Positions 1 through 5,409 of a DNA stretch of 64,000 nucleotides are shown here, one piece after another. This DNA is from Macrostomum lignano (Eukaryota). The first letter of the stretch is position 1, and every line of letters begins with the position of its first letter. The translations under genes were made by a program, and so were the position numbers. Below the pieces are notes generated by a model. That model had not been told where the DNA came from. It ran no database searches and saw only the letters and a program-made list of their open reading frames with translations. The stretch lies in contig NIVC01001306.1 in NCBI GenBank assembly GCA_002269645.1, forward strand, positions 62,001 to 126,000, read 5' to 3'.

Positions 1-3000
1 TTCGCGCCATCTCCTCACCAGCCAGACTCATGGCCACCTGCGGTGCAGAGATAGATAGATAGATAGATAGATAGATAGATAGATAGATAGATAGATAGAT
101 AGATAGATAGATAGATAGATAGATAGATAGATAGATAGATAGATAGATAGATAGATAGATAGATAGATAGATAGATAGATAGATAGATAGATAGATAGAT
201 AGATAGATAGATAGATAGATAGATAGATAGATAGATAGATAGATAGATAGATAGATAGATAGATAGATAGATAGATAGATAGATAGATAGATAGATAGAT
301 AGATAGATAGATAGATAGATAGATAGATAGATAGATAGATAGATAGATAGATAGATAGATAGATAGATAGATAGATAGATAGATAGATAGATAGATAGAT
401 AGATAGATAGATAGATAGATAGATAGATAGATAGATAGATAGATAGATAGATAGATAGATAGATAGATAGATAGGGAGAACGAACTCTCACCGTTTCAGC
501 CGGCGGCACGCTCTGCCAGCAGGGCCCATGATCCATCAGGAAGTACTTCCTGTACATTTTGTTGATAAACCCGGACTCGCGCAGCGTCAGCAGGACTTTG
601 TTGACGTCGCGGAGCTTCTTCGACCCGACTGGGAAGGCGAAGGCGTAGCTGTTGTCGCTGATCAGGGTGGCGGCGGCAATCACCTCGCAGCCGCTGTACC
701 GCGAGTAGAAATCGGCCATAGTGGATTCCATCACTGCAAAGTAGCGATCGTCGGTTTTGACCAGCTCCAGCAGGGCCTCCACGGTGTTGACGTTGGCCAG
801 CTTGGAGTTCTTGTTCAGGCCGGCCATGTACTGCCTGTAGAACATCTGCATCACCGGGTCCTGCGAATTCTTAAAGAATCTGTGCGTGTTGCTGTTGGGA
901 AACCACACAGGTGTGGCGCCCTTGAACGCATCTGTGCCGACTGGGTTCAGCTCCGGAATGTCCTCGATCCCGAACTGGCGCTCCAGGCCGCCGCGGCTGG
1001 CCACCAAGGCGCAGAGGAAGGCGGCCGTGTAAGAGGCAGCGAATGCGCAGACGAACAACCACCAGAAGGCGCTGAGGCAGCGACCCACCAGGGATTTTGG
1101 TGAGCGGCGGTAGCCTGTTAGTGAGGGTAATTTTGTGGTACTAGTAACTCGGACTCGCCACTAGCGTTATCTCATACAGACAGGTACCAATGTCTCATAC
1201 AGACAGGTACAAGTGTCAGACAGACAGGTACCACTGTCTCATACAGACAGGTACCACTGTCTCATACAGACAGGTACCAATGTCTCATACAGACAGGTAC
1301 CACTGTCTCATACAGACAGGTACCACTGTCTCATACAGACAGGTACAAATGTCAGACAGACAGGTACCACTGTCTCATACAGACAGGTACAAATGTCAGA
1401 CAGACAGGTACCACTGTCTCATACAGACAGGTACAAGTGTCAGACAGACAGGTACCACTGTCTCATACAGACAGGTACAAGTGTCAGACAGACAGGTACC
1501 ACTGTCTCATACAGACAGGTACCACTGTCTCATACAGACAGGTACCACTGTCTCATACAGACAGGTACCAATGTCTTATAGACAGGTACCAATGTCTCAG
1601 ACACTCAGGTACCAATGTCTCATAGACAGGTACCAATGTCTCATACAGACAGGTACAAGTGTCTCATACAGACAGGTACAAGTGTCAGACAGACAGGTAC
1701 CACTGTCTCATACAGACAGGTACCACTGTCTCATACAGACAGGTACCAATGTCTCATACAGACAGGTACCACTGTCTCATACAGACAGGTACCACTGTCT
1801 CATACAGACAGGTACAAATGTCAGACAGACAGGTACCACTGTCTCATACAGACAGGTACAAATGTCAGACAGACAGGTACCACTGTCTCATACAGACAGG
1901 TACAAGTGTCAGACAGACAGGTACCACTGTCTCATACAGACAGGTACCAATGTCTCATACAGACAGGTACCACTGTCTCATACAGACAGGTACCACTGTC
2001 TCATACAGACAGGTACCAATGTCTTATAGACAGGTACCAATGTCTCAGACACTCAGGTACCAATGTCTCATAGACAGGTACCAATGTCTCATACAGACAG
2101 GTACCACTGTCTCATACAGACAGGTACAAGTGTCAGACAGACAGGTACCAATGTCTCATACAGACAGGTACCAATCTCTCATAGACAGGTACCACTGTCT
2201 CATACAGACAGGTACCAATGTCTCATACAGACAGGTACCACTGTCTCAGACAGACAGGTACAAGTGTCAGACAGACAGGTACCACTGTCTCATACAGACA
2301 GGTACAAGTGTCAGACAGACAGGTACCACTGTCTCATACAGACAGGTACAAGTGTCAGACAGTCAGGTACCAATGTCTCATACAGACAGGTACAAGTGTC
2401 AGACAGTCAGGTACCAATGTCTCATACAGACAGGTACCACTGTCTCATACAGACAGGTACCAATGTCTCATACAGACAGGTACCACTGTCTCAGACAGAC
2501 AGGTACAAGTGTCAGACAGACAGGTACAAGTGTCTCAGACAGACAGGTACAAGTGTCAGACAGACAGGTACCACTGTCTCATACAGACAGGTACAAGTGT
2601 CAGACAGTCAGGTACCAATGTCTCATAGACAGCTACCACTGTCTCATACATACAGGTACCAATGTCATATAGACGGTACGAGTGTCTCAGACAAACAAGC
2701 GCCCTTCAAGCTACAAAGCAAGTCCTCGAATTGCCCACCTTGAAAACAACCGGTGCTAATCGTATAGTAGAGGCTGCCAAACAGCGAGAAATCGTTCATC
2801 TGGGCCAGCAAAGCATGGCTGACGCTGGTGTCTCTGGCGCTGTGCTCAGCCTGACGGGCTCGGAACTCGCGCGGATTGTAGCGATCGTTGAGGAACAGAA
2901 AGAATCCGGTGAGGGCGAAGATCACGAAGCTGGCGCACCAGACCCCGGCGTCGAAAACGCCAAGAAAGAAGGTAATGCTGCGAGAGACCTGTTTGTTTTT

Positions 3001-5409
3001 TATTGTCAGTGTCAAATAAAATGTCTGTTTTCTGTAGTAGCAACAGTATTATCTCACCCTGCAAAACGACCTACCCAAAACGACCCGGTTGAAAAAAAAA
3101 CTAATCTTTGGGATCTTTGGAATCAATTCTCGGGATCGCACTCTCCCTGCGCCCCGACAAGCTCCAATCTACCCTCGGTGACTAAATCTGGCATTACCTG
3201 GTTTTTCCACCGCGGCCGTCGTACAACCACGGTCAAGCCGGTGTCCATAAACTCGTACGAGAAGTCAACGTGCTTCTCTCGCAGCGCCGTTATCGTCAGC
3301 GGGGCGGCGGCAAAGTCCGCCCGGTTGTGGTACACTTCGCCGATCAGACCAGACCAGGTGTCATTTTTTTCGTCGTAGGCGCCGTAGCGACCGTCGGCCA
3401 CCAGGGTGAAGTTGGGCTGGAAGTGCAGCTCCTTGCCCAGCTCGCGAACCAGGTCAGGCATCAGGCCGACCCATTTGCCGTGCAGGTCTCGCATACAGAA
3501 GCCTTCCAGCTTTTTTCAAGTCGGGAGGGTGGGTTGGTTGCAGATGGAGATTGACTTGCATCCAAGCACAGGGAGAGGTGGACCAACGCCTCCAACTGTC
3601 GGCAGTCCCGCCTTGCCGTCCCCTGTCCCTCCCCCGCCCTCCACAGCGCCCTGCCTAGACTCAACCGCAGGGACATCAGGGCGGTAACCATGGCCCTCTC
3701 TAATCATGGCTGCTTTGCCAGGAATTGTCACCTCCAGGAAAAAAACCCGTAGCGAGGAATGCCTATTCTGCCTCTCCGGTGTCGAGAATGCGGAGCACTT
3801 CATCTGTGGATGCCTCACCTGTACTCAGGACAGACCCACCTACGAGTACTTCGGCCCAAATCGGACCTCTCCAACGTTCTCAGGCCTGAGAACCTCTGCC
3901 AGCTCGTCCGCTACCAAAGGGCTACCTGGCGAGCGACCATCCACTTTCCAGACTTTCCAGAGGGGAACCACGCTGCGGACACCAGCACCACCGGATTTCC
4001 CTGCACGACACCGCAGCACCAGCTGCCTGTGGTCGCCAGGGGTTCACAAAAATTCCCAAACCCCCCTGCAGCTAAGTCAGAACTGGTGATTAGGTGGCCC
4101 AGTACTAGCTAGCTGGTTTCTAGAAAGGACTCAAGGTCTCTAGAAATGACTCAAGGTCTCTAGAAGGGACTCAAGGTGTCTAGAAGGGACTCAAGGTGTC
4201 TAGAAGGGACTCAAGGTTTCTAGAAAGGGCTCAAACTCTCTAGAAAGGACTCAAGGTATCTAGAAAGGACTCAAGGTCTCAAGAAGGGACTCAAGGTCTT
4301 TTGAATGAATGAAACTCTTGATAGTAACAGCCAGGAATTAAGTCCCCGACCCTCCGGGCCGTCGAGATATAAAAAAATTCTGCTAGAAAGTCGAATTTTT
4401 CCTTAAGCGCTAGTGAATTCAATACACCATTGTGCGCCAATCAGCCCTGACCATCCTTGCCAAGCTTCATCAGCTCTGACTGATCAGCTCTGACTGTGGG
4501 GCAAACCTCAACTGCTAAATATCCTCAGCTAGTCTGCTCAACCAATCTGTCATCATCCCGACGCCGTCGGCACCTTGAAAAATTGCCCTAGGTGACTCTA
4601 GAATCGTTGAATATCTCGACGTTCCGGAAGCCTAACGAATTGATTCTTCTTTGAGAAGAGGCGCGTGACTGCGTTGCTTCGTTCCAGAGTCCTTTCTAGA
4701 GACCTTGAGTCCCTTTTAGAGACATTGAGTCCCTTCTAGAGACCTTGAGTCTTTTCTAGAGACCTTGAGTCCTTTCTCGAGACCTTTCTCGAGACCTTGA
4801 GTCCCTTTTAGAGACATTGAGTCCTTTCTCGAGACCTTGAGTCCTTTCTAGATACCTTGAGTCCTTTCTAGATACCTTGAGTTCTTTCTAGAGACCTTGA
4901 ATCCTTTCTAGAGACCTTGAGTCCTTTCTAGAGACCTTGAATCCTTTCTAGAGACCTTGAGTCCTTTCTAAAGACCTTGAGTCCTTTCTAGATACCTTGA
5001 GTCCTTTCTAGAGACCTTGAGTCCTTTCTAGAGACCTTGAGTCCTTTCTCGAGACCTTGAGTCCTTTCTAGAGACCTTGAGTCCTTTTTAGAGACCTTGA
5101 GTCGTTTCTAGAGACTTTGAGTCCTTTCTAGAGACCTTGAGTCCTTTCTAGAGACCTCGAGTCCTTTCTAGATACCTTAAGTCCTTTCTAGAGACCTTGA
5201 GTCCTTTCTAGATACCTTGAGTCCTTTCTAGAGACCTTGAATCCTTTTTCGTGAAACCCAGAGCAAAGAAACAATCAGGAAATTTTAAAACAACAGTCCT
5301 TTGGCCTTACCTCGATAACTGCAACTTGAAGTGTCTCAGCATTTGCAGGACCAGCCGGCATCAAACACAGCAGCGTCCAGAGAGCGATCGGCAATCCAAA
5401 TATAAGCAT
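1..5409 (-). CDS. Ionotropic glutamate receptor-family channel lacking the ATD (KBP/IR-like); 3'-partial. Exons: 5409-5311, 3509-3198, 2988-2739, 1114-492, 37-<1
   Basis: Spliced translation: signal peptide [24 protein letters not shown]; S1 ETLQVAVIE|LEGFCM...[33 protein letters not shown]; M1 [11 protein letters not shown]; pore [18 protein letters not shown]; M3 [17 protein letters not shown]; S2 FAVMESTM...[10 protein letters not shown]...[14 protein letters not shown]. All introns are GT-AG with matching phases (0,0,1,0). The exon-2 acceptor (aaaaag|CTG) is the weakest junction. M4 and the C-tail lie beyond the window edge. Confidence 0.9.
50..474 (+). repeat. (GATA)n microsatellite filling iGluR intron 4
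   Basis: Pure AGAT run of about 105 units, within about 18 nt of the donor and about 12 nt of the acceptor. Confidence 0.99.
1172..2690 (+). repeat. 21-23 bp minisatellite (tctcatacagacaggtaccactg / tcagacagacaggtacaagtg) filling iGluR intron 3
   Basis: Directly visible tandem variants. The ORFs at 1190-2743 are repeat translations. Confidence 0.98.
3740..3950 (+). mobile_element. Degenerate 3' end of a non-LTR retrotransposon ORF2 (C-terminal CCHC zinc knuckle)
   Basis: [20 protein letters not shown] is followed, after a frameshift, by ...[23 protein letters not shown]. This resembles the CxxC-x7/8-H-x4-C plus 'L..LL.F...T' terminus of LINE RT proteins (I/R1/Loa-like). Recognised by eye only. 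Confidence 0.55.
4116..5248. mobile_element. Foldback-like element: two arrays of one 20-bp unit in inverted orientation around a ~390-bp core
   Basis: The left array (4116-4300) has unit tctagaaaggactcaaggtc. The right array (4688-5248) has unit gagtcctttctagagacctt, its reverse complement. Confidence 0.7.

Follow-up and report, generated by a model that had tools for sequence, protein, structure and literature searches.

The question raised by this locus is whether an ionotropic glutamate receptor (iGluR) gene of the flatworm Macrostomum lignano truly encodes a subunit whose signal peptide is joined directly to the ligand-binding domain (LBD), with no amino-terminal domain (ATD) between them, and, if so, whether that build arose in this lineage alone. 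The gene lies at the beginning of a 64,000-nucleotide stretch of DNA (the window), which is an exact piece of contig NIVC01001306.1 of assembly GCA_002269645.1. The contig is labelled L002 below, and window position p corresponds to L002 position 15410-p. L001 denotes a Logan RNA contig, L003 denotes contig NIVC01001569, and P0001 and similar labels denote the database proteins that were compared. Our analyses make it likely that this is a genuine ATD-less iGluR-family subunit gene, that it belongs to a Macrostomum-specific clade, and that it is most similar to a multi-phylum set of short spiralian proteins partly filed as lophotrochozoan ionotropic receptors (IRs). The gene itself is genuine and selectively maintained, and it is already present in public annotation as an uncharacterised hypothetical protein. 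Worms, molluscs and acorn worms commonly show the short build, and the Macrostomum gene is a new flatworm case rather than a one-off invention.

Five exons with GT-AG borders on the minus strand of the window join into a reading frame of 440 residues that is still open at position 1. Throughout its length this spliced model matches P0001 (hypothetical protein BOX15_Mlig002294g4, 525 aa) with 100% identity, and a six-exon coding sequence of 1578 nt yields P0001 exactly, the final 85 codons falling beyond the window edge. Exon 1 (5409-5311, codons 1-33) contains the ATG (5409-5407), the leader (residues 1-24, ending ANA|E) and the S1 strand ETLQVAVIE, and it ends at a GTAAGG donor. Intron 1 (5310-3510, with GTAAGG...AAAAAG borders) has two minisatellite arrays inside it and is followed by exon 2 (3509-3198, codons 34-137), which encodes the remaining S1 including the equivalents of GluA2 P478, T480 and R485. 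The two exons are spliced in phase 0, in agreement with a preliminary description of the window in which the exon-1 leader was read as ending in the equivalent of the first S1 strand and splicing into the rest of S1. Exon 3 (2988-2739, codons 138-220 plus 1 nt) encodes the pre-M1 segment, M1 and the M2 pore loop, with Phe at the Q/R site, and is separated by intron 3 (2738-1115), almost all of which is a 23-nt minisatellite of 1.5 kb (1170-2697), from exon 4 (1114-492, codons 221-428). The latter carries M3 with a degenerate gate motif and the entire S2, including Cys363 and Cys418. Intron 4 (491-38) holds (AGAT)106, and the first 37 nt of exon 5 (37-1, codons 429-440) encode part of the pre-M4 segment before the exon extends past the window. 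All of these features are on the minus strand. M4 and a short C-terminal tail are encoded outside the window by exons 5 and 6 (L002 15373-15543 and 17636-17758).

The encoded protein has the order signal peptide, S1, M1, M2 pore loop, M3, S2, M4 and short tail. Pfam analysis of the protein identified PF10613 (Lig_chan-Glu_bd) at residues 26-132, covering profile positions 2-114 (4e-25), PF00060 (Lig_chan, 2e-17) and PF00497 (SBP_bac_3), while the protein gave no Pfam match to the ATD domain ANF_receptor (PF01094), S1 beginning at residue 25-26. Read by eye, leader residues 1-24 resemble a signal peptide, with a hydrophobic core and an A-x-A end. The best sequence matches in the PDB were GluA2 and GluA1 (E ~4e-49, residues 43-433, identity ~25%). 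An AlphaFold2 model built from a 14-sequence alignment had a mean pLDDT of 74.5, with values of 85-94 over most of the LBD, and placed a helix over the leader (5-15), a strand over the exon-1 residues ETLQVAV (25-31), and helices at M1 (151-174), the pore (206-217), M3 (229-268) and M4 (454-487), the last of these corresponding to the sequence LTLHSFSGPVLFYFASLLL.... A Foldseek comparison of the model with the PDB placed AMPA-receptor chains comprising the LBD and transmembrane domain (TMD) on top (E ~6e-29). The split S1/S2 around M1, pore loop and M3, the subsequent M4, and the combination of PF10613 with PF00060 identify the protein as a member of the iGluR superfamily. Two marks of canonical AMPA, kainate, delta and NMDA receptors, the ATD of ~400 aa (PF01094) and SYTANLAAF in M3, are missing.

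ATD exons hidden upstream of the gene or within intron 1 were considered and rejected after two negative searches with a working control. When 152 relatives, of which about half carry an ATD, were compared with the window by tblastn, no match outside the gene was better than E=0.046. A hidden Markov model built from 63 ATDs and run with filters off against all 2802 six-frame open reading frames (ORFs, >=15 aa) of the window gave no match at E<=10. Neither the tblastn search nor the ATD profile identified an ATD-like exon in the 58.6 kb upstream of the gene. When held-out ATD pieces were spiked into the ORF set as a positive control, 66% of the 40-aa pieces and 85% of the 60-aa pieces were recovered. 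An ordinary ATD divided into exons would almost certainly have shown up, while a highly divergent N-terminal region would not.

Transcript evidence came from Logan contig L001 (1863 nt, run SRR28338165), which holds an unbroken ORF of 529 aa that is 72% identical to P0001. The intronless ORF and the level of identity mark it as an RNA-derived orthologue from a related species. It starts with Met, a hydrophobic leader and TLNVAVIE|LEGFCM, the same leader-to-S1 build, and its continuity across VAVIE|LEGFC confirms the join between exon 1 and exon 2. The preliminary description had held that the signal peptide is fused straight to S1 with no ATD, and on this point Pfam, the structure model, the upstream scans and the orthologous RNA contig agree. 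Transcripts with ATD exons between the signal peptide and S1 had been named there as the observation that would overturn this; such exons are absent from the contig, in which the join is continuous. A Nei-Gojobori comparison of P0001 with the L001 orthologue over 523 codons gave a nonsynonymous rate (dN) of 0.21 and a synonymous rate (dS) of ~1.0. The resulting dN/dS of ~0.2 indicates purifying selection and argues against a pseudogene, an alternative that had been raised from the beginning and is rejected here.

The region immediately before the ATG deserves separate consideration. An acceptor-like hexamer, CTGCAG, occupies 5417-5412 on the minus strand, 2 nt before the start codon, where an acceptor (ctgcAG, 5413-5412) had previously been noticed, and it is a candidate acceptor for spliced-leader (SL) trans-splicing or for an intron in the 5' untranslated region (UTR). 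M. lignano adds a 35-nt SL to ~30% of its genes at the acceptor motif [T/C]TNCAG (PMC8629364). CTGCAG fits this motif, and its use as an SL trans-splice acceptor is plausible, in keeping with the earlier suggestion of a UTR intron or trans-splicing. If the SL were joined at CTGCAG, the ATG at the 3' end of the SL would not be in frame with the receptor ORF and would start an overlapping upstream ORF of 17 codons.

The hexamer also admits a different interpretation, in which the gene model is 5'-truncated, a real ATD that is either far upstream or too divergent to recognise is spliced in 2 nt before the ATG, and the apparent signal peptide is an internal hydrophobic segment. In addition to the hexamer itself, this interpretation draws on the orthologous RNA contig, which stays open in frame to its 5' end, and on the existence of insect IRs that carry long N-termini without recognisable ATD similarity (Croset et al. 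2010, PMC2924276). Against it stand the 58.6 kb of upstream DNA without an ATD signal by tblastn or by the controlled profile, the first 6 kb of which are mostly minisatellite and are followed by a DEG/ENaC gene on the opposite strand. Furthermore, a start with Met and a hydrophobic leader right before S1 is seen in the orthologue, in the paralogues and in 40 relatives of several phyla, and the leader sequences vary yet stay hydrophobic, as signal peptides do. We therefore regard a 5'-truncated model as very improbable and retain the leader-to-S1 protein.

To evaluate the residues that contact ligand in characterized receptors, residue columns were aligned to GluA2 by means of the HMMER alignment. 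The equivalents of P478, T480, R485 (the Arg in PLTITALRE), T655 (in SNTHRFF) and E705 (in MESTM) are kept, as are both cysteines of the S2 disulfide (GluA2 C718-C773; Cys363 and Cys418 here). The alignment on R485, T655 and E705 upholds the prior observation that the Arg, Thr and Glu contacts for glutamate are retained. The pore and gate are more divergent. The Q/R site is Phe (GCFQGY) in place of Gln or Arg, and the gate motif of M3 is degenerate, reading SYTAAFLCA versus the SYTANLAAF found in the ATD-bearing relatives of the alignment.

As the residues that grip the alpha-carboxylate and alpha-amino groups are kept, the subunit most likely binds an amino acid, as far as can be judged from sequence. 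In the mechanism that we propose, the two-lobed LBD would take hold of an amino acid by its alpha-carboxylate and alpha-amino groups, and binding would be coupled to a cation pore whose gate (SYTAAFLCA) and selectivity site (Phe at Q/R) are both altered. The subunit would probably act within a heteromer, in chemosensory or neuronal cells, and a role as an amino-acid chemoreceptor may reasonably be suggested.

The same gate and Q/R residues would also suit a protein that binds ligand and is no functional channel, either a non-conducting or modulatory subunit comparable to the vertebrate kainate-binding proteins (KBPs) or the delta receptors, or the product of a decaying gene. The KBPs, which have the short build, are not known to form channels by themselves. 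Decay is disfavoured by the dN/dS of ~0.2, which was obtained over the whole coding sequence including the membrane segments, and by the intact M1-M4 and pore helix. Insect IRs, moreover, conduct despite M3 motifs that are just as divergent. We judge a non-channel protein unlikely and continue to favour an amino-acid-gated subunit.

The distribution of the short build was evaluated through an exhaustive HMMER search over 1.84 billion representatives, which gave 3329 matches. Close matches (E<=1e-74, 41-79% identity) consisted only of Macrostomum proteins and one unnamed Logan protein. After the Macrostomum set, the matches fall to E ~1e-49 to 1e-40 and 25-31% identity, and below this gap short (~450-520 aa) and long (~900 aa) proteins are intermixed. 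Fewer than 120 residues precede S1 in 64 of the 152 compared proteins, and the order Met, hydrophobic leader, S1 strand was seen in 40 of the 150 top representatives. The short relatives include proteins from nemerteans (Lineus longissimus and Tubulanus polymorphus), annelids (Capitella teleta and Owenia fusiformis) and molluscs (Aplysia californica, Babylonia areolata and Haliotis), together with a single hemichordate protein of short build (P0036, 465 aa, from Ptychodera flava). The Capitella protein P0114 (CAPTEDRAFT_218867) carries the JGI number that Table S3 of Croset et al. 2010 (PMC2924276) lists as CcapIR265. The accessions of the Aplysia and Capitella relatives are absent from the supplements of Ramos-Vicente et al. 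2018 and from Greer et al. 2017, whose classifications omit them. One of the top matches, P0008 (Lineus longissimus, 989 aa), is a tandem of two complete ATD-less LBD-channel units, either because two adjacent genes were fused in the model or because the protein is truly tandem-duplicated.

Relationships among these proteins were assessed with a bootstrapped neighbour-joining (NJ) tree of 148 LBD-TMD cores, from which ATDs had been removed (425 columns), and with a topology-independent profile test. In the tree, the Macrostomum clade is monophyletic (bootstrap 0.91-0.97) and lies within a run of ~45 leaves, all but one of which are short. For the profile test, one profile was made from short non-Macrostomum cores and another from ATD-bearing cores. 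The Macrostomum cores scored 34 to 100 bits higher with the short-type profile than with the ATD-bearing profile; with the same profiles, the median for cross-validated held-out proteins was +67 bits if they were short and -75 bits if they were long. The two groups also differ in their motifs, the short group having an xQGY/F pore motif and no SYTANLAAF and the long group having MQQG and SYTANLAAF.

The Macrostomum-specific clade is small and includes at least four members with complete leader-to-S1 N-termini (P0001, P0002, P0004 and P0007). The leaders of the paralogues differ in sequence and keep their hydrophobic character. Since all four proteins start leader-to-S1, the ATD loss predates the Macrostomum paralogues, which sets a minimum age for it on sequence grounds. 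The clade has traits that are absent in the other proteins, namely its own version of M3 (SYTA/AGGFLCALVA) and a pre-M4 insertion (E-x-LARMFR). A word-indexed search with the 14-sequence profile returned only five Macrostomum proteins, all found before (its prefilter was saturated). One of the ATD-less paralogues, P0007, is encoded next to the gene (L002 21159-23838, minus), ~3.4 kb past its 3' end in a tail-to-tail arrangement; it is 35% identical and has the leader-to-S1 build. This convergent two-gene layout is repeated on NIVC01001569, where P0004 lies beside a P0005-like gene (L003 10001-15438 and 19020-22081). The two 'A' genes of the pairs are 42% identical, and the two 'B' genes, compared by eye in tblastn alignments, look far closer. 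The conserved pair could hint at heteromeric partners.

Several observations weigh against the affiliation proposed above or against parts of it. With regard to the transcript, the support comes from a contig of a related species and not from the M. lignano gene itself, and because the 66-nt leader of L001 has no in-frame stop, that contig alone leaves the start codon formally unproven. With regard to the tree, it was built without insect IR, IR25a, Delta or named Phi reference sequences, and in this simple NJ analysis the nodes that tie the Macrostomum clade to the short spiralian proteins, CcapIR265 included, have bootstraps of 0.07-0.38. In the phylogenetic comparison that the preliminary description had recommended, both the NJ tree and the core profiles group Macrostomum with short spiralian proteins, but the deep nodes of the tree are weak. 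The short-type core is also found in six proteins that have a Pfam ATD (hemichordate P0010, P0017, P0073, P0116 and P0140, and Owenia P0100). With regard to ligand and conduction, the position of GluA2 Tyr450 is Leu and positions 653/655 are Ser/Thr. The published rule assigns Gly/Thr at 653/655 to glutamate and Ser with a non-polar residue to glycine (Ramos-Vicente et al. 2018, PMC6307864), so that the combination seen here predicts neither ligand. With its degenerate gate motif and Phe at the Q/R site, the subunit may not conduct at all. Finally, typical tuning IRs have lost some of the Arg/Thr/Asp-Glu contacts, and the Macrostomum protein keeps all three.

The weak deep nodes bear directly on whether the Macrostomum (macrostomorph flatworm) lineage, descending from an AMPA/kainate-like ancestor that had an ATD, lost this domain independently, the likeness to other short receptors then being convergent. 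Such a history would accommodate the large gap that isolates the Macrostomum clade (E from 1e-74 to 1e-49, identity from >40% to <31%). It would also accommodate the ATD-bearing same-core proteins of an annelid and of hemichordates and the short hemichordate protein that stands beside long ones in the tree, a pattern in which loss probably occurred more than once. Other evidence points away from it: every Macrostomum member with a complete N-terminus is short, so the loss precedes their duplications; short spiralian proteins are the closest outsiders in E-value as well as in tree order, and the cores score as short-type by the margin given above; and the xQGY pore motif and the missing SYTANLAAF are common to the Macrostomum and short spiralian proteins. 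We consider an independent loss rather unlikely, and the earlier statement that the receptor was independently shortened in this lineage is not supported, given that the nearest non-Macrostomum relatives also run from leader to S1 and that the core is of the short type. Affinity with the short spiralian set remains the preferred reading. Since the core type also occurs in ATD-bearing hemichordate and annelid proteins, shortness cannot be taken as a clean shared derived character; the receptor class holds both builds, and the ATD was therefore probably lost more than once within it. Given the weak deep nodes and the shared core type, the short build may go back to a single old loss or to several.

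A broader and quite tentative proposal, to which we would give only a small chance, is that the Macrostomum proteins, the short nemertean, annelid and mollusc proteins, and the same-core hemichordate proteins constitute one ancient bilaterian iGluR class in which SYTANLAAF is lost, the Q/R site is not Gln and the ATD was shed repeatedly. If this were true, either IR-like receptors would not be protostome-specific or the deuterostome Phi class would have unrecognised protostome members, and flatworms would retain amino-acid-binding members of the class, possibly acting as conserved convergent gene pairs.

Comparison with known receptor systems helps to place the protein. IRs have been described across Protostomia, including molluscs and annelids, in a survey that did not cover flatworms, and are defined by an iGluR-type LBD and channel with a short N-terminal region and no ATD except in the co-receptors (Croset et al. 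2010, PMC2924276). The Macrostomum protein has this short, ATD-less N-terminal region. With the lophotrochozoan IRs (CcapIR265 and AcalIR209-217) it has in common PF10613 and PF00060, the absence of an ATD, a length of ~450-520 aa, a signal peptide followed by S1, a divergent M3 motif, a non-Gln Q/R site, a protostome host and a small lineage-specific expansion. CcapIR265 is, in addition, one of the short relatives whose core profile gives the Macrostomum proteins their better scores. The Macrostomum protein differs in keeping the three glutamate contacts, and identity is only 23-31%. Judged by these features, the protein would work like the lophotrochozoan ATD-less IRs and is best filed beside them. 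Insect tuning IRs, which were compared by description, likewise have no ATD and a non-NMDA iGluR origin; unlike the Macrostomum protein, they typically have an N-terminal region of ~200 aa and have lost at least one of the R/T/E contacts. By analogy with these receptors, a heteromer of the tuning subunit with an ATD-bearing co-receptor of the IR25a/IR8a type is a plausible working model.

The vertebrate KBPs (chick, frog and goldfish) resemble the protein in having a signal peptide fused to S1, a length of ~450-490 aa, retained contacts and four membrane segments. They are, however, kainate-class proteins of vertebrates in which SYTANLAAF is canonical, whereas the Macrostomum protein has a degenerate motif, a flatworm host and AMPA-type best matches (~25% identity). 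The shortening of the KBPs and that of the Macrostomum protein are clearly separate events. The AMPA receptors GluA1-4 are the best PDB match by both sequence and fold and share R485, T480, T655, E705 and the S2 disulfide; the Macrostomum protein differs from them in lacking the ATD and SYTANLAAF, in having Phe at the Q/R site and Leu for Tyr450, and in its short C-tail. Prokaryotic GluR0 also has no ATD. GluR0 has no M4 and has a potassium-channel-like filter, while the Macrostomum protein has an animal-type pore loop and M4, the latter showing that it is not GluR0-like. The Phi class of the AKDF subfamily lacks Gln at the Q/R site, has a weaker SYTANLAAF, and is reported only from non-vertebrate deuterostomes and as lost in protostomes (PMC6307864). 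Its traits were compared by description, and hemichordate proteins with such traits carry the short-type core of the Macrostomum protein. A relation to the deuterostome Phi class, to which these hemichordate relatives may belong, is a possible lead.

The finding is useful rather than surprising, because the gene was already publicly annotated and its build is not unique. Flatworms are absent from the published surveys of iGluR and IR evolution that we found, and the present results add a small receptor family from this group that lacks the ATD and keeps the amino-acid-binding triad. A literature search for iGluRs or IRs in Macrostomum, planarians and Platyhelminthes returned only a paper on Schistosoma miracidia in which IR25a was used in BLAST searches, which is uninformative for this gene. 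As M. lignano allows transgenesis and RNAi, it offers a tractable system for the function of short iGluRs outside arthropods and for the need for an ATD-bearing co-receptor. The hemichordate same-core relatives, with and without an ATD, bear on the protostome-specificity of IR-like receptors and on the frequency of ATD loss; their sequences suggest that a strictly protostome distribution may be questioned and that the ATD may have been lost repeatedly.

A further database entry appears to derive from the same gene or a close copy. P0003 (373 aa), which is named 'Calpain catalytic domain-containing protein' in UniRef, begins at an out-of-frame ATG within exon 1 (window 5344 onward), contains several frame errors, and includes as an exon an ORF of intron 1 (~4030-3845, minus) that shows no similarity to ATDs. 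P0003 is a garbled older model of the P0001 gene or of a duplicate, and a calpain identity was rejected, as the Pfam content gives it no support.

The remaining features of the window concern its neighbouring genes and its repeats. None of the neighbouring genes is related to the receptor. A divergent DEG/ENaC (ASC) channel gene on the plus strand starts ~6 kb upstream and extends from ~11514 to at least 21928, with an ASC exon at 21470-21928. The minus strand carries a carboxylesterase-family exon (41396-42208), a gene for a protein with five CCHC zinc knuckles (53961-54869) and an ATG8 homologue (60161-60718). The tandem-repeat load is extreme (49-474, 1170-2697, 6094-6695, 7208-8880, 9819-10508, 10978-11183 and 11776-12500), and the minisatellite-rich 6 kb 5' of the ATG consist for the most part of 32-, 22-, 20- and 18-nt arrays together with (ATAG)181. 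Within intron 1, one 20-nt minisatellite is present in two arrays of opposite orientation (4115-4299 and 4687-5247) around ~390 bp, an inverted pair that forms a foldback-like structure and is possibly a transposon remnant.

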